This document shows positions 1-24,905 of a stretch of DNA of 24,905 nt, piece by piece. How positions within the stretch are numbered: the first letter of the stretch is position 1; each line of letters opens with the position of its first letter. This stretch comes from Geosiphon pyriformis uo1 (lineage: Eukaryota > Fungi > Glomeromycota): assembly GCA_016748015.1 (NCBI GenBank), contig JAAOMT010000706.1, positions 509,371 to 534,275 of the forward strand, in the 5' to 3' direction. A model generated the notes under the pieces. It did no database searches. It saw only the letters and a program-made list of their open reading frames with translations, and was not told where the DNA came from. The position numbers and the translations under genes were made by a program.

Positions 1-698
1 AGATTGAAGAAACCCAATCTTCTCTTATGTCCCTTATTGATAAAGATTGGAGTCGAAGCTTTTCAGAAACTCTTGAAGATATTATTTCCAAACACGAGCG
101 TTCCTCTCACTCAAATAATGTCCATCAGTATGTAGAAAACTTCCCCTTCGCTGGTTATTGTCGGGTAGATAGATCATCGCCAATCTGGGATGCACTCAAG
201 CGAGATCTAGCCAAAGAATTTAAGGAATTAGAAGCAAATTGGGAAAGAGGAACAAATTCTCGCCTTCAAACTTTCATTACAAATACAATTAACATAAACT
301 GGAGTAAAATAGAAGGCTGTACAGCACGTTGTCCTATTTGCAAAGCAAAATGTGAACTTCCCGAAGGTGATCATACTCATGAAACCTCAACACACATCTT
401 GGCTGCTTTCGGTGGATGTAATGATGTGAATACTCATGAGGCGGTTTTAATTGTTTGTTCTGAGGTAGATGCGCGTGATAAAGGAAAATGGCGGAGTCGT
501 TTTATGACATCCTTAGTTCCAATCAATGAATTAATGCAAGCAAATCAGCCAAAATGGAAACCGCTATCATTTGGTCAAGTTCAAGAAGAAAAAGCAAGAA
601 ATATGAAACATATGTGGTGGCATTTGAGAAAAGAGTTATGTGAAAAATATGATATGATAGACTCAACCCTAAATGATTGGGAGAGATATGTTCGGTAG
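1..698 (+). CDS. 3' end (partial, N-terminus upstream of window) of a GVIN1/VLIG-like very large GTPase, copy A
   Basis: Frame is open from the window edge (IEETQSSLMSLIDK...) to TAG at 696-698. It contains GCTARCPICKAKCELPEGDHTHETSTHILAAFGG...LIVC...W...WW, matching the GCxxxCPxCxxxC...H..H...H...G...C pattern I recall from the GVIN1/VLIG C-terminal region. The GTPase domain itself is not visible in this window. Confidence 0.7.
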   Translation, partial: IEETQSSLMSLIDKDWSRSFSETLEDIISKHERSSHSNNVHQYVENFPFAGYCRVDRSSPIWDALKRDLAKEFKELEANWERGTNSRLQTFITNTININWSKIEGCTARCPICKAKCELPEGDHTHETSTHILAAFGGCNDVNTHEAVLIVCSEVDARDKGKWRSRFMTSLVPINELMQANQPKWKPLSFGQVQEEKARNMKHMWWHLRKELCEKYDMIDSTLNDWERYVR

Positions 699-739
699 AT
701 TTCTCGCAGTGATATTCATTGAATTATAGCCACAGAATT
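1..739 (+). repeat. Left arm of long inverted repeat (pairs with 23344..24082)
   Basis: Ungapped manual alignment gives 27 mismatches in 739 nt (26 coding, 1 in the 3' UTR). Homology ends 41 nt after the stop at ...GCCACAGAATT. Confidence 0.95.
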
Positions 740-2505
740 CGAAATCAAACATTTTAGATATTCTTTTAATGTAGTTTTACACTTAGATTTTTACATAAAA
801 TATATTTTTAAAATTACGAAACTAAATATCAAAGGTTAGCTTTTTTCATAAATTGAAAACCGAATTAAATTCAAATAAAATATTTTGTAGCAAAAATATA
901 CTAAATATTTTTTGATTTAGTACTTTAAGCCCAAACAACTAGTAAAAAGAGAAAAAATTGGAACATAAGAATAATTCCGACAATTTTTTGAAGATAAAAA
1001 TTCCAATAATTAAACATGAAATACATTATAAATTTTAAAATTTGATGAAAGCTCTACTTTCCAACATTCATTTCCAAAAGTGTCTCTCTAAATTACAAGT
1101 CTGCGAATATGGGTTTTAAAATGAATCAATTCTAAAAAATATTACATTTTTAGGTTAGTTTTTGCAGTTAGATATAATCCTCAAGGAAAGGACCAAATTT
1201 AATAATTTGAAATGTACAATTTTAGAATCACCTGAAAATCTTAACCAAACGCAAATGAAAGTGAGAGGCAGAAGATCTTACAGATTGATGCAATTCATTT
1301 ATTGGGAATTTTTGAAGTTAATTCGTGCTCAAAAAGTTAGAGCGGTTTCTTGAATAATTATTTAGTTCGCGATATTAGTTGAACAATTATTTTGCTCTAA
1401 GCATTAATCGCGTGCTTGATGTTTGATTAGATGCTGCAAATTTGACTAAAGTCATATTTTCATTGAATTTCTAAACGGCATTCATTTAGAATGTCGGTTG
1501 AAAATTTTTAATCTAGTGTCATTTAAATTGGGGAGCTTGATCACTAATAAATAACCTGCTTTAAAACATTTATCAATACTTCATATAACACCCTCCATCA
1601 TATGATTGTTTGTGTTAAAATTATGCATAGGTCCTTTTTGATGAAATTTTAAAATTATCTATATCAATTGACCACAGACTATACCTAAGCAAAATATTAT
1701 ACCAAAAATCAAGTCAATTTAATTTGATGCAAGCAATCCCGATCTATAGCTATGAAAAAAAAAGTTTCGAGAATTCTTTGAAACATCAAAACCTTTAAGA
1801 TTCCATTAAAGAGTTTCATGTTAATCATATGCTCTGAATAATTAATTTAGATTGAAAGATAAATTGTTCGAATATGAATCGAATATGATGAATGAAATGG
1901 TCAAGTGTGCATAAGAAAATAAATCTGAAAAAAATGCTTTTCATCACATGCAATTGAATTATGAGCGCCATAATTTATAAATTAGATTTTCTGAACAAAG
2001 AATGAGAAATGAAACTCTAAGATATGCAATAATCTGAAACTTTTTTTGAGAGTCAATCTTAAATAATATCATCTTCCAAAAAATTTATAATTTTTGTAAT
2101 TGTAAACTTATCCTTGAATTTAGCAATTTTAACATCTAGAATTACTGGAATCATAATTGAAAATTCCTCAAGTCCTAAATTTTACGCGAATCATAATCGA
2201 AGAGATTTAAGAAATTTAAGATCGAGAAAACTTTGGAAACACATTAGCTTCTTCTCAACACAAATAAGGTAAAAATGAAGGGCGAAATCGTCAACGCTGA
2301 AGCACTTGACTGCAAAAATGTGATGAACCGAAAAACAGTAACTTTTCCTTGGCAATTTTTGGTCTATTCGAATAACTTACTAAAACTGCGCCATTTTACA
2401 ATTGAAGAATTCCAAAAAATTCTAAACTCGAAATAGTTCGAATATCCAATAGATAAGAAAACATAAAATAATATTAATACTATTGAATCCGGTATATTAA
2501 AATTT

Positions 2506-7809: not shown

Positions 7810-9672
7810 ATGAAAAAAAATTTAGTGAAAGATATACCCAAAGATGCCATCAAAAATTTTAAAGCAAGTTTATCTGGCCAATCTGCCGTCTTGCTTCCTG
7901 AAGATGGTAAAAATTTTGAAAATACATTAATTTGGTGGGCTGATAATTCAGTCAAAAGACCGGGAGTAGTTGTTCAAGTATGTAAATTAGATTCTTGGAA
8001 AAAGTTGTTGTAGGCTAAAATAATTTTCTGAGAGAAGTGAGATTGCTCAAATATTTCATTCCTTATTGATTTTATACACAGGTGGCAGGGTTAAATGATC
8101 TTGTAGACACGGTAAGGAATTTCTAATTATTATTATTATTATTATTATTAAATTAGCCTTTAAAGATTGATTCTAAAAATGAATATTATAGATAAATTTC
8201 ATACGAACCAACAAACTTGACTTTGCAATTCGTTGCGGTGGTCATTCGACTTCGGGTGCATCGAGTACATTGGGTGGTGTTCTTCTCGACCTCCAAAAAC
8301 TTAATAATGTACGGGTTGATGTTGATTCAAAGTTAATTTACGTTCAAGCAGGTGCATTGGCACGAGATGTAGATAATGCTGCACATGCTCATGATTTGGC
8401 AGTCGTCACTGGCACGGTTAATTATACCGGAATCGGCGGGTTAACTTTGGGTAGATTCAATTATAAAAGTATTGGGCGGTGGCATAAGAATTAATTTAAT
8501 ATTATCTAACTTTTTGATTCTCAACTTAATTTTAGGGGGTGGATTTGGTTATCTCACAGGTGAGCCTTACAATTTTTTTAGTTTGGCAGGATATTTTGTC
8601 ATTCTTTTCTATTCATTGTAAACTCGAAATTTAAAAAGGACGCTACGGATTAATGATCGACAATCTCGTTAGCGCTACAATAGTTCTCGCCGACGGTACA
8701 GTCAAACAATTATCAGAAACCGAAAATAGCGACCTTTTCTGGGCGATCAGAGGAGCTGGTAGTAATTTTGGCGTGGCATACGAATTTGTCTTTAAGGCAC
8801 ATGAACAGAAAAACAAAATCTATGTTGGTAAGATGTTATTCGAACCAGAAAAATTGAATGCTGTGGTGGATGCGACTAATCAGTGGGCGGCGACTCAGCA
8901 TGAAGATGCAGCTGGTTTTTTTATCATTTCAAGACCGCCACCAGATTTCAAGGTATTGCTAAACTTTGAGAATTGGTTAAAAGCATTCCTCAAATTTTCT
9001 AGATAATAACACAAAATCCTTTAATCAAATATCAATTTCACTATAAAGCCTACATTGCTTTTCCTTTCATTCAATAATTCAGATTCAATCGAACTATTGA
9101 AAGAACGTTTTGCTCCTCTTTATGCTCTCTCTGCATTCCAAGAAGACATAAAAGCAATGTCATTCCCGAAAGTTAATACCATGCTGAACGAACAGAGCCC
9201 TCACGGAGGCCGTAAGGCGCACAAAAGCGCCTTTATTTCACGTCTCACCGCGCCGACTGTTCAAAAAGTATTTGACAAATTTGTGGAATTTACAGAAGAA
9301 AATCCAACTGTCCGTGACTCAGTAATTCTATTCCAATTTCATAATCTCGGAAAATTCTCACAAGTTCCACCTGACGCAATGGCATTTGGACATCGTCACA
9401 CATGTAACGCGTTCATCATAAACCAAAAATGGAAGCATGAACGAGATGATTCCAAAGTATATCAGTGGGCCAATGAAATGGCATCCATTTTGCAGGTTGA
9501 TAGTTATCAAAGTGAGTATCTCAATTATAATACTTATCGTACTCAAGATCCTGATGACAGACAAGGTTTAGCTCGACGGGTGTTTGGCCAGAATTTAGAA
9601 AGATTGAAAGAGATCAAAAGAAAATACGACCCTGAAGTATTTTTTGATAAGTGGGTAGTTGTTTATCCTTGA
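7810..9672 (+). CDS. FAD-linked oxidoreductase, berberine-bridge-enzyme-like / 6-hydroxy-D-nicotine oxidase-like (FAD_binding_4 + BBE), 6 exons, 472 aa
   Basis: Exons 7810-7977, 8082-8111, 8192-8450, 8536-8559, 8639-8952 and 9049-9672 total 1419 nt, all introns GT-AG, frame continuous. Motifs: IRCGGHS (covalent FAD His), [42 protein letters not shown], YLNY, and FGQNLERLKEIKRKYDPEVFF. No signal peptide. Confidence 0.95.
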
Positions 9673-14500: not shown

Positions 14501-14967
14501 ACATTAAGACAAAAAACCATTTATTTTAAAAAAAATTATAGTTAATAATTATTATCATTATTAGAAAAAAAAAAGATATTGCTTTAGTTTTTATAACATC
14601 ATCCCAACTTTTAAAATAAATAATAATACCATTTATTAATTGAAAAAAGATACATGTAAAAATATAACTTGCTTTGCTTTTTTTTAATAAACAATAATTT
14701 TTTAAAAATAACTACATTAGACAATACAATCAAATGTTTAATTTATTTCTATCTAATAGGTATATTGTTGCTACTGTTGTTAAAATTGTTAAGGACATTA
14801 TTGTTTACAACTAGATTAAAGTTGATAAAGCAAAACTGTTAAAAAAATCAAAAATAAATAAAGAGTATTTTAAATCTGTTTTACAACATTTTGTCTAACT
14901 GTTTCTATTACTAAAAAGTCTTTGCTTTCTTAATAATAATAATAACAAGAATATTGAATGCTAACAT

Positions 14968-15429
14968 CTAATGGTGTTTAACACCGTTTGCGTTACCGTT
15001 GTAGTTTCCATTATAGGAACCATAATTTTTGTTACCGTTGTAGTTTCCATTGTAGGAACCATAATTTTTGTTACCGTTGTAGTTTCCATTGTAGGAACCA
15101 TAGTTGTAGTTACCATTCAAGTTTCCATTGTAGGAACCATGGTTGTAGTTACCATTCAAGTTTCCATTGTAGGAACCATGGTTGTAGTTACCATTCAAGT
15201 TTCCGTTGTTGCTTCCAACGTTGTAGTTACCATTGTAGTTTCCGTTGTTGCTTCCAACGTTCCCGTTGCCATTGTAGTTTCCGTTGTTGCTTCCAACGTT
15301 CCCGTTGCCGTTTCCATTTCCATTTCCGCTACTTCCATATCCATTTGGCACGGCAGAGACGAAGAGGTAGGTGAGAAGAAGAGTTACCAAAAAGATGGTG
15401 GGCAAGCGAGCAAACGATTGGTAAGACAT
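14968..15429 (-). CDS. Small secreted Asn/Gly-rich tandem-repeat protein (153 aa)
   Basis: Signal peptide MSYQSFARLPTIFLVTLLLTYLFVSA, then eight 13-aa repeats N[VHY]GS[NY]NGN[YL]NGNx. TATAAAA lies on the minus strand at 15561-15567. Confidence 0.9.
   Translation of the reverse strand: MSYQSFARLPTIFLVTLLLTYLFVSAVPNGYGSSGNGNGNGNGNVGSNNGNYNGNGNVGSNNGNYNGNYNVGSNNGNLNGNYNHGSYNGNLNGNYNHGSYNGNLNGNYNYGSYNGNYNGNKNYGSYNGNYNGNKNYGSYNGNYNGNANGVKHH
14989..15300 (-). repeat. Coding tandem repeat, 8 x 39 nt
   Basis: Corresponds to aa 44-147 of the 153-aa ORF. Confidence 0.95.
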
Positions 15430-18667: not shown

Positions 18668-19325
18668 GGCTGCACACTCTAAATTTTTCATTTATTATTA
18701 AGACGTTTTTTAACCGGAGTTGTGTTACATGGAGGAATACTATGCTTAATATTGGCAACATCGTCACACTCTTCTTTTTGAATGATTAAATCACCACATC
18801 TGCCTATTTTTTTCTAATAACAAATAATGTGCTTTCCATTATTCAACTTTGATTCTTTCTTGCTTTGCTTACAAGACTATGTGATTCACCTTTGCAAAGA
18901 TGTGGTTATTAAAATTCACTGAACTGCTGTTAGCTTGGTAAGGCTATCGAATGATCAGTCAATAAAAGACCATACACCTCAAGATAATCCATTGCAAGTG
19001 ATCCTGCTTCATATTCAACTAATCTAAGTATTCAAGATACAACAGTTATTACCAATAAATTAACTTTTATCCTTGTTTATAATAAATGATACTAATACTC
19101 ACAGATTGTAAACTGACAGATGAATCCAGTCAAGATCAAAATGGTTGGCACCCATCTGCCTCTTGGAAGTAAAAGTGGTGGAGACAAATAATGAGTTTAT
19201 GAAACGTTTACAGTCAGCAGGATGTGACGATGTCGGCAATATTAAGCATAGCATTTCTCCACGCAACACAACTCGGCTTAAAAAACGTCGTAATAATAAA
19301 TAAAAAAATTTTTGCGTATGCAGCC
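18668..19325. mobile_element. Non-autonomous TIR DNA element (658 bp) with ~102-bp imperfect TIRs and a candidate 5-bp TSD TGAAA
   Basis: 18668-18768 is the reverse complement of 19223-19325 at roughly 85% identity; both ends read GGCTGCA. TGAAA is present at 18663-18667 and 19326-19330. Confidence 0.8.
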
Positions 19326-19451: not shown

Positions 19452-20574
19452 CGAGAGGGTGAAATCTGAGATAACCAATAGTAAAATCTGCGATGAGATA
19501 GGGTAAAAACCTGTAAACCCCGTGATTGTATCAGGTGAAATCTGCGATAAATAGACATTTTTTAAGAGCAACGGCACCTTTTGAGGGCAGACTCAATTGA
19601 GAGTACTGTAAAGTCGACCAAACTAAGTGGCACAACTTTGAATGGAAAATTCAAACGAGTAATACTGTTATTACTGAAACAGGTAAGCTTAAAAATAGAG
19701 GTCCTTCTTCATTAGATATAACGATCAGTTTTTATTGCAAAAAACTTAAATCTTTCCATAGATGACAAAATTCATTGTATAACCACTTTTGGGAGTAGGA
19801 CGCGAACTTCTAATTGCCATTGCCCTTGCTTTGTAGGTTTTTGCAACCCATCGTATTGATACCAGCCAGAATCGTTGATATTTTCGAAACGAACATCGGC
19901 AATATGATGGATGCCGTTACAAAAAGAAACTTCCATGAGGCGAAATCTATATTAAAAATTAATAAATAAATACAAATTTACCTTTGTTTTGTAATTTGAT
20001 TTCCTTTAGGAAAATTAATTTCTTCCGGTAAATCTTTGTTCTGAAGAGACATTGATGGCAAGGATTAGAGGCAGTCGCTGGTCAATTTGTCTTTTTGATA
20101 TGGTATCACCTGTGCATCGGTAAAAATACCTAAGAAAAGGTTAGAATGCAAAGCGAAAATAGAGGAAAAAATATAGACACTTTACTCAAGCTTTCCAGTA
20201 TCCAATGATACGCATTTTTCAGTCATATAAGCATTTGTGGGAACGTTTTTTAGAGCCTCTCCGTCTGTCGATTTGAATTCTAATCTGCTCGCAATAATAT
20301 AAGGATTTTGCCAGTGTTCAAGGCAAGACTCGAAATAATCGTTTTCTGATAATACCGGAACCTGCGGTTTTCTACAAATTAAATTAGGTGCATTAATATA
20401 AATATATCGAACGAGCATGACGGTAGACTGTTTTTCATATAATATAGCCAATAAAATGCGATTTATCGCAGATTTCACCTGATACAATCACGGGGTTTAC
20501 AGGTTTTTACCCTATCACAGATTTTACCCAGGTTTTACATTACGTGACTGATCATCTCAGATTTCACCCTGTCG
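19452..20574. mobile_element. Non-autonomous TIR DNA element (about 1.12 kb), TA-flanked, with structured TIRs
   Basis: Ends read TA|CGAGAGGGTGAAATCTGAGAT and ATCTCAGATTTCACCCTGTCG|TA. There is a perfect 56-bp inverted block (19497-19552 / 20461-20516) and a repeated GT[GA]AAATCTG[ACT]GAT motif three times per end. Confidence 0.9.
19746..20450 (-). pseudogene. Spliced, frameshifted C-terminal half of a USP-like (peptidase C19 fold) cysteine protease inside the TIR element
   Basis: Proposed introns 20130-20185 (GTAAAG...CTAAC...TTAG) and 19947-19981 (GTAAAT...ATAG), with two frameshifts (about 20040 and 19838-19842). Reconstructed sequence: ...KLEYFYRCTGDTISKRQIDQRLPLILAINVS/KDLPEEINFPKGNQITKQRFRLMEVSFCNGIHHIADVRFENINDSGWYQYDGLQK/TYKARAMAIRSSRPTPKSGYTMNFVIYGKI*. 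Confidence 0.65.
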
Positions 20575-23343: not shown

Positions 23344-24082
23344 AATTCTGTGGCTATAATTCAATGAATATCACTCCGAGAAATCTACCGAGCATATCTC
23401 TCCCAATTATTTGGGGTTGAGTCTATGATATTATATTTTTCACATAACTCTTTTCTCAAATGCCACCAAATATATCTCATATTTCTTGCTTTTTCTTCTT
23501 GAACTTGACCAAATGATAGCGGTTTCCATTTTGGCTGATTTGCTTGCATTAATTCATTGATTGGAACAAAGGATGTCACAAAACGACTCCACCAATTTCC
23601 TTTATCACGCGCATCTACCTCAGAACAAACAACTAAACAGGCCTCACGAGTACCCACGTAATAAAATCCACCGAAAGCGGCCAAGATGTGTGTTGGGGTT
23701 TCATGAGTATGATCACCTTCGGGAAGTTCACATTTTGCTTTGCAAATAGGACAACGTGCTGTACAGCCTTCTATTTTACTCCAGTTTATGTTAATTGTAC
23801 TTGTAATGAAAGTTTGAAGGCGAGAATTTGTTCCTCTTTCCCAATTTGCTTCTAATTCCTTAAATTCTTTGGCTAGATCTCGCTTGAGTGCATCCCAGAT
23901 TGGCGATGATCTATCTACCCGACAATAACCAGCGAAGGGGAAGTTTTCTACATACTGATGGACATTATTTGAGTGAGAGGAACGCTCGTGTTTGGAAATA
24001 ATATCTTCAAGAGTTTCTGAAAAGCTTCGACTCCAATCTTTATCAATAAGGGACATAAGAGAAGATTGGGTTTCTTCAATCT
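23344..24082 (-). repeat. Right arm of long inverted repeat (pairs with 1..739)
   Basis: Reverse complement of 1..739 at about 96% identity, no indels seen. Confidence 0.95.
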
Positions 24083-24905
24083 TTTCCATGATGTTTTTAA
24101 CTTTTTTCTCTTNNNNNNNNNNNNNNNNNNNNNNNNNNNNNNNNNNNNNNNNNNNNNNNNNNNNNNNNNNNNNNNNNNNNNNNNNNNNNNNNNNNNNNNN
24201 NNNNNNNNNNNNNNNNNNNNNNNNNNNNNNNNNNNNNNNNNNNNNNNNNNNNNNNNNNNNNNNNNNNNNNNNNNNNNNNNNNNNNNNNNNNNNNNNNNNN
24301 NNNNNNNNNNNNNNNNNNNNNNNNNNNNNNNNNNNNNNNNNNNNNNNNNNNNNNNNNNNNNNNNNNNNNNNNNNNNNNNNNNNNNNNNNNNNNNNNNNNN
24401 NNNNNNNNNNNNNNNNNNNNNNNNNNNNNNNNNNNNNNNNNNNNNNNNNNNNNNNNNNNNNNNNNNNNNNNNNNNNNNNNNNNNNNNNNNNNNNNNNNNN
24501 NNNNNNNNNNNNNNNNNNNNNNNNNNNNNNNNNNNNNNNNNNNNNNNNNNNNNNNNNNNNNNNNNNNNNNNNNNNNNNNNNNNNNNNNNNNNNNNNNNNN
24601 NNNNNNNNNNNNNNNNNNNNNNNNNNNNNNNNNNNNNNNNNNNNNNNNNNNNNNNNNNNNNNNNNNNNNNNNNNNNNNNNNNNNNNNNNNNNNNNNNNNN
24701 NNNNNNNNNNNNNNNNNNNNNNNNNNNNNNNNNNNNNNNNNNNNNNNNNNNNNNNNGATCATTGAATTGATTACTCATAAAAAGAAATAAATCGTCTGAA
24801 AACTTTTGAAGCCATTGAAAAGTTTCATCATACTCGTTTCTCAAGATCTTTTGATGGGAGATTTGGCTGCAAATTGTTGCGCATAGAAGAGAAATATGTT
24901 CAAGA
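23385..24905 (-). CDS. GVIN1/VLIG-like very large GTPase, copy B (partial, interrupted by an assembly gap, continues beyond window)
   Basis: Near-identical to copy A (position p pairs with 24083-p). An open minus-strand frame on the far side of the gap (LEHISLLCATICSQISHQKILRNEYDETFQWLQKFSDDLFLFMSNQFND) is plausibly the same gene. Stop TAG at 23385-23387. Confidence 0.7.
24113..24756. other. Assembly gap (644 N)
   Basis: Run of N. ORFs that span it in the track are artefacts. Confidence 0.99.

Follow-up and report, generated by a model that had tools for sequence, protein, structure and literature searches.

Patchy divergence among clustered paralogues of a GVIN1/VLIG-like large GTPase gene in Geosiphon pyriformis, probably through exchange of tracts

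Clustered paralogues of a gene for a GTPase of ~1600 aa in the fungus Geosiphon pyriformis most probably exchange sequence tracts with one another. When two of these copies are compared, one part of the alignment has a single difference and the next has 25; this step would then be a patchwork produced by gene conversion or recombination, and diversifying selection is not demonstrated. The relationships among three clustered copies change abruptly between two adjacent nucleotides (Fisher p=1.7e-7), and the gene carries more than one such breakpoint. The tail in which the differences accumulate had appeared to a first-pass annotation, made from the DNA letters, as a hypervariable Cys/His domain of a candidate immune or non-self recognition locus; it is instead a conserved domain that defines the family of these GTPases.

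Results

Copies of the gene and their assembly context

The window, by which we mean the whole stretch of 24,905 nucleotides analysed here, corresponds to C666:509371-534275 in a genome of 128 Mb with a G+C content of 30%. The organism is Geosiphon pyriformis, a member of the Glomeromycotina, in keeping with the fungal origin that the first-pass annotation had proposed. That annotation had also taken the gene to be duplicated, and it is indeed multi-copy: genome-wide searches with DNA, protein and profile queries found six copies of its tail, three clustered and three dispersed. We label them A, B and C (clustered on contig C666), D (on C335), E (on C453) and F (on C483), and number positions by window nt throughout. 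D, E and F, the last of which is truncated by its contig end, are more distant; KAG9306472.1, a homologue from G. pyriformis, is encoded on contig C483. The parts of the gene found in the window, and the tail of copy D, are as follows.

1..698, + strand: copy A, the last 231 codons (frame from nt 3) and the TAG stop (696-698) of a GVIN1/VLIG-like large GTPase gene
699..766, + strand: 3' UTR common to the copies, shared by A and B to nt 739 and by A and C to nt 766
23385..24112, - strand: copy B, the same last-exon segment, with its stop at 23387-23385, extending to an assembly gap
24113..24756: assembly gap within copy B, 644 N
24757..24905, - strand: copy B, a 149-nt piece of the preceding exon, 100% identical to copy C
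C335:37486-38268: tail of copy D (within L015, C335:29500-38500)

A (+) and B (-) are arranged tail to tail at a spacing of 22.6 kb; over 739 nt (1-739 and 23344-24082) they are inverted repeats of each other, with a complementarity of 96%. Their homology stops at nt 739, and the unique 3' flanks differ between A, B and C. Reading frame 3 is open through to the TAG in both A and B. The gap-free copy C (+) is located 26 kb upstream, at C666:478.6-483.9 kb. The first base of the window is also the first base past a gap of 3749 N, into which the remainder of copy A falls, although an N-terminal piece of it is visible at L007 5649-6222; copy B meets a second N run, of 2574 N, in addition to the one listed above. 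The sizes of these runs roughly match the lengths that A and B lack relative to copy C, and they have the appearance of assembly gaps left by near-identical paralogues that could not be told apart.

Gene structure and GTPase identity

Copy C was searched exon by exon, with colinearity judged by a reference protein. It is a gene for ~1600 aa. Its five open segments, at L013 2158-7362, are colinear with an Ambispora gerdemannii protein (P0002) over residues 26-1593. Exons 2 and 3 match the Pfam family PF25683 (URGCP_GTPase) with 38.9 and 22.5 bits (5.7e-10 and 5.3e-5), each below the cut-off of 55 bits because an intron splits the G domain of this copy; this copy also has a P-loop, GLESSGKS, and a DSEG motif. 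Against the same cut-off, full-length homologues reach 88-111 bits; they come from Ambispora, Funneliformis, a sponge and other eukaryotes. The G domains of A and B fall inside assembly gaps, and the evidence for this domain is carried by copy C and the homologues. A single G-domain region was recognised in copy C and in homologues of 1500-1870 aa, with no second LG domain found in them, and neither the exons of copy C nor the homologues gave a Pfam match to HET, NACHT or NB-ARC.

A library-wide HMMER search with the last exon of copy C yielded 91 representatives, many of them ~1600 aa long and matching at their extreme C-terminus. They stem from Glomeromycotina, a chytrid, homoscleromorph sponges and dinoflagellates, and some carry the automatic labels 'VLIG-type G domain-containing' or 'Interferon-induced very large GTPase 1'. 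The first-pass annotation had suspected a GVIN1/VLIG-like GTPase, and the matches of the copy C exons to PF25683, the full-length homologues above the cut-off and the GVIN1_C identity of the tail (described below) support, at the level of sequence, membership in the GVIN1/VLIG/URGCP large-GTPase family. The protein begins with an extended N-terminal region, followed by a single G domain of the URGCP/VLIG type and a helical region, and ends in a GVIN1_C domain built on invariant Cys and His residues; by homology, it may act as a dynamin-like GTPase that self-assembles in a GTP-driven manner.

The Cys/His tail is a GVIN1_C domain

The last 141 residues are alignable across 60 homologues and give rise to the following features.

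273..695, + strand: GVIN1_C domain of copy A, 141 aa, by alignment, AlphaFold2 model, fold match, language-model features and PF26772 on a 223-aa ORF
23388..23810, - strand: GVIN1_C domain of copy B, by a precomputed PF26772 match on a 234-aa ORF
318..458, + strand: Cys/His scaffold, C16 to C62 of the domain, presumed zinc-binding core, unchanged in A, B, C and E

The residues that are invariant in the GVIN1_C alignment are, in domain numbering, G15, C16, C20, C23, C27, H36, H41, C62 and W95; those that are near-invariant are P21, K26, F46, G48 and W115. AlphaFold2 modelled the tail on this alignment with a pLDDT of 92 and a pTM of 0.81. In the ESM Atlas, the tail model matches a cluster of chordate 'Interferon-induced very large GTPase 1' proteins with PF26772 at a TM score of 0.75 over 134 of its 141 residues, and language-model features assign the tail to GVIN1_C with a score of 0.94 and 189 shared features. 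Precomputed Pfam annotation likewise places PF26772.1 on the window ORFs P0124 (copy A) and P0127 (copy B); our own Pfam scan left the tail blank because the PF26772 model was missing from the scanned set. Sequence search, Foldseek and VIA-align (best Z 3.1) revealed no solved relatives of the tail in the PDB.

The tail is therefore a conserved, family-defining domain and not a lineage-specific hypervariable appendage. Nor is it the most divergent part of the gene in its DNA, since these copies are 15-21% different in N-terminal segments. The Cys and His residues presumably bind zinc, and the tail may be a zinc-stabilised module that binds a partner or target, as extrapolated from the family.

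The genealogy of the copies changes at nt 386/387

Base-by-base comparison of A and B gave the same counts as the first-pass annotation, namely one differing site (nt 283) in nt 1-386 and 25 sites in nt 387-698, and revealed one further difference at nt 707, in the 3' UTR. Nei-Gojobori counting returned the same 23 replacement and 3 silent changes, with 21 residue differences. The variable patches and the invariant CxxxCPxCxxxC...HxH motif are also as originally described; the variable residues avoid the conserved scaffold, whose Cys and His residues are the same in A, B, C and E. What we read differently is the cause of this pattern. The differences cluster far more than chance would allow, but their rise from 1 to 25 is due to a change of genealogy at nt 386/387 and does not simply follow a domain boundary.

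386..387: recombination or gene-conversion breakpoint, with A and B together upstream and A and C together downstream (Fisher p=1.7e-7)
417..452, + strand: dense variable patch, codons 139-150, in the loop after the F-x-G motif, with 12 nucleotide differences between A and B

With copy C as the third sequence, A and B agree against C at 12 sites in nt 1-386, where A and C never agree against B; in nt 387-739, A and B agree against C at 2 sites, and A and C against B at 20. Several of the states specific to B (nt 436, 450, 492, 607 and 609) also occur in E, the outgroup copy, indicating that B retains older states, while A and C have derived ones in common. Such a change of genealogy between adjacent positions points to gene conversion or recombination between paralogues. 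In this reconstruction, nt 1-386 would be a recently shared tract common to A and B; from nt 387 onwards, A would hold a tract shared with C, and B would keep an older lineage with several of the states seen in E. It is then the switch of A from a B-type to a C-type tract that raises the number of A/B differences from 1 to 25.

The breakpoint at nt 386/387 is one of several along the gene. In the visible pieces of the N-terminal exon, the first tract sets A apart at 54 sites (B and C diverge by 1.8%, A by 14.7%), and past an identical stretch of 70 nt it is C that stands apart, at 28 sites (A and B diverge by 0%, C by 20.7%). The DNA divergence between A and B in the tail, at 7%, is below that of the N-terminal tracts of the same copies. 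Copy D differs from A, B and C by ~4-5% in nt 1-386 and by ~20% in nt 387-506, and its UTR is similar to that of E. A, B and C had also been considered as simple recent duplicates, which the 15-21% difference between their N-terminal segments rules out.

This mosaic of the N-terminal exon, a second clean one besides that of the tail, is seen in the pieces at L007 5649-6222 (A), L009 2651-3158 reverse (B) and L008 5358-5990 (C). The breakpoint there lies directly before the HLIDLL motif. The Met of B and C is missing in A, which may place the true start in an exon further upstream. Copies E (C453:183829-184576) and F (C483:220098-220603) show the opposite patchwork, with 4.9% divergence in nt 1-386 and 0.8% in nt 387-506.

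The dense patch holds all three codons with multi-nucleotide differences (141, 143 and 148) and is variable also in D, E, F and the wider family. A search of the assembled genome for the donor of the patch in B returned nothing beyond the six known copies, of which the best reached 90%.

B and D both begin to diverge at about the same place, in nt 387-418. It could be that selection keeps diversity at the 3' part of the tail while conversion homogenises the remainder, and this shared onset of divergence is what such a combination would leave behind.

Selection and constraint in the tail

The first-pass annotation took the Cys/His domain to be a module for ligand specificity that selection diversifies, and on this view selection, not genealogy, clusters the replacements. 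We consider this doubtful. A and B differ in nt 387-695 by 22 replacement and 3 silent changes, and the resulting omega of 1.85 lies on the side of selection, but it is not significantly different from 1 (p=0.25), nor is omega in any other pair (p=0.17-0.81 across all pairs). Changes confined to a single copy among A, B and C amount to 35 replacement against 5 silent, matching the 22:4 of changes private to copy D (p=0.73). The 3' end of D is pseudogenic, with the invariant Cys62 changed to Tyr, two conserved Trp codons changed to TAG, and a tandem duplication of 36 nt. As the ratio in A, B and C is like that of this pseudogene, the 'excess of replacements' is what unconstrained sequence would yield.

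Comparisons with older divergence are more favourable to selection. The 35:5 ratio is more replacement-rich than the older divergence of C from E in the last exon (150:69, p=0.013), and the ratio in the tail is far more so than that of an old N-terminal tract (13:24, p=6e-5). Among recent differences, replacements predominate throughout (41:5, p=0.07), which, together with the site-model result below, leaves room for some positive selection. The variable residues also tend to avoid columns that are conserved in the family (3 of 25, p=0.05), as they leave the scaffold untouched, whereas the changes in D show no such avoidance.

Site models (M1a and M2a) were fitted with our own implementation, its code checked by bootstrap, to the five intact copies on segment-specific trees. 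The comparison of M2a with M1a gave an LRT of 5.5 (p=0.06) in the 5' part and of 7.04 (p=0.03) in the 3' part, where omega2 was 3.4 at 25% of sites; in a parametric bootstrap, the latter LRT was reached in 1 of 41 replicates. The candidate selected sites fall into two loops, at domain residues 49-58 and 71-83. The signal was lost, however, when the three multi-nucleotide codons of B (141, 143 and 148) were masked (LRT 2.6, p=0.28) or the 12-codon patch was dropped (LRT 2.2, p=0.34). Recombination and multi-nucleotide events are known to inflate tests of this kind, and the number of usable sequences is five. The abrupt boundary at nt 386/387, for its part, is explained by the change in topology.

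Between the clades, omega for C versus E is 0.27, 0.26, 0.03 (G domain), 0.32 and 0.47 (last exon) in the successive exons, and windows of 60 codons peak at 0.88, all remaining below 1. This profile indicates that the genes are functional and that the last exon is their least constrained part. The possibility that A, B and C are pseudogenes is ruled out by their open frames, their intact scaffold and an omega well below 1 outside the last exon. Taken together, the loops of the tail are under relaxed constraint with the scaffold preserved, and positive selection is possible; replacements build up in two loops of GVIN1_C, with the scaffold kept, in an otherwise purified gene.

Read evidence for the mosaic

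An assembly artefact, in which near-identical paralogues were collapsed, the contig end at window nt 1 joins reads from different copies and the A/B identity in nt 1-386 is unreal, is very improbable: the window does begin directly past the 3749-N gap, B is flanked by gaps, and Logan unitigs break at variant sites, with none of those listed spanning nt 386/387 for copy A, but the reads and the remaining copies speak against it. In the main DNA run, a unitig that covers nt 1-213 without differences has a depth of 253, compared to ~91-125 for single-copy flanks, and since it differs from copy C at nt 99, 116 and 144, two genomic copies must carry the A/B-type 5' tract. A unitig specific for A exists at nt 451-581, and the unique 3' flanks of A, B and C are distinct. 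Moreover, the same type of mosaic is found in gap-free sequence, in the comparison of C, D and E and in the N-terminal pieces. The B haplotype was rebuilt independently by Logan contigs of 458 nt and 434 nt from two other runs, covering nt 184-641 and 305-700. A chimeric contig end at copy A is thus unlikely. A read variant (328T, 337C, 362T) had raised the possibility of a fourth near-identical copy, which was ruled out, as the variant matches copy D.

Discussion

Exchange of tracts between paralogues, which we favour as the origin of the pattern, concerns a gene whose closest described counterparts are vertebrate. Like GVIN1/VLIG-1, it combines a PF25683 G domain with a PF26772 tail, occurs as clustered multi-copy genes and falls into the class of dynamin-like large GTPases; the tail is ~25-30% identical to non-fungal homologues. 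Human GVIN1, described with two LG domains and a mass of 209 kDa, coats cytosolic Burkholderia in a manner that requires interferon-induced cofactors (bioRxiv 10.1101/2025.03.24.645074). The fungal gene differs from it in its size of ~1600 aa and its one recognisable G domain, and is known from sequence alone. To our knowledge, the interferon system is absent from fungi.

Further comparisons help to delimit the family. URGCP (upregulator of cell proliferation), a single-copy vertebrate gene, has the G-domain family PF25683 in common with the fungal gene, and we know of no demonstrated link between URGCP and immunity. The GBP/atlastin/RHD3 proteins are reflected in weaker matches of the G domain to PF02263 and PF05879, below or near the respective cut-offs, and GTP-dependent dimerisation as in these proteins seems likely by analogy. 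They differ, however, in their helical and C-terminal domains, and the fungal tail has no CaaX box or membrane anchor. The nearest relatives with the same architecture and the same C-terminal domain are the Gigaspora rosea protein A0A397U7W1, a 'VLIG-type G domain-containing protein', and A0A9N8YM80 of Ambispora, with names that are automatic database labels. Fungal HET-domain and NLR-like STAND genes resemble the present locus in their clustered, multi-copy arrangement, in exchange between paralogues and in replacement-rich variable segments. Unlike these allorecognition genes, it lacks HET, NACHT and NB-ARC domains as well as hypervariable WD, ANK or TPR repeats, and its NTPase belongs to a different class.

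Part of this is already known, in that databases label glomeromycotan homologues as VLIG-type and Pfam models the tail; a literature search for papers on VLIG/GVIN1 genes in fungi or Rhizophagus found none that were relevant. The occurrence of complete genes, with the G domain and GVIN1_C together, in an early-diverging fungus, chytrids, sponges and dinoflagellates shows that the architecture predates interferon and the vertebrates. The coating of cytosolic bacteria by human GVIN1 is reportedly a recent discovery, and we know of no role described for the C-terminal domain. For the latter, the compact, high-confidence model of GVIN1_C, with its defined set of invariant Cys and His residues, offers a predicted structure that can be put to the test.

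A role of the gene in defence, or in the handling of the intracellular bacteria of Geosiphon, is a conjecture by analogy. One can go further and ask whether GVIN1-type GTPases might be an ancient, pre-animal module for cell-autonomous defence or symbiont control, kept in lineages that house intracellular microbes; in the Geosiphon cluster, conversion would shuffle tracts between paralogues while selection diversifies two target-recognising loops of a zinc-stabilised GVIN1_C tail. The lineages in question, which we take to be microbe-housing, are Glomeromycotina (Geosiphon with Nostoc), homoscleromorph sponges and Symbiodiniaceae. We regard this wider scenario as improbable as it stands, somewhat more so than selection on the tail taken by itself. 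More immediately, if the copies exchange tracts as we propose, the locus is a clear case of gene conversion between paralogues imitating a hypervariable domain in a comparison of two sequences.

Other features of the window

Between copies A and B, two adjacent open segments occupy window 8653-9672 (+), the second of which matches PF08031 (BBE; 2.2e-7); from this match, the region is probably a gene for an FAD-linked, berberine-bridge-like oxidase. At window 14953-15342, a 39-nt tandem repeat of ~8-10 units with 91-92% matches is open on both strands and, in the + frame, encodes a 13-residue repeat rich in Val, Thr, Ile and Ser. Two pairs of inverted repeats, of 95 nt (85%, 440 nt apart) at window 18681-19310 and of 70 nt (91%, 886 nt apart) at 19494-20519, may be the terminal repeats of small transposons.
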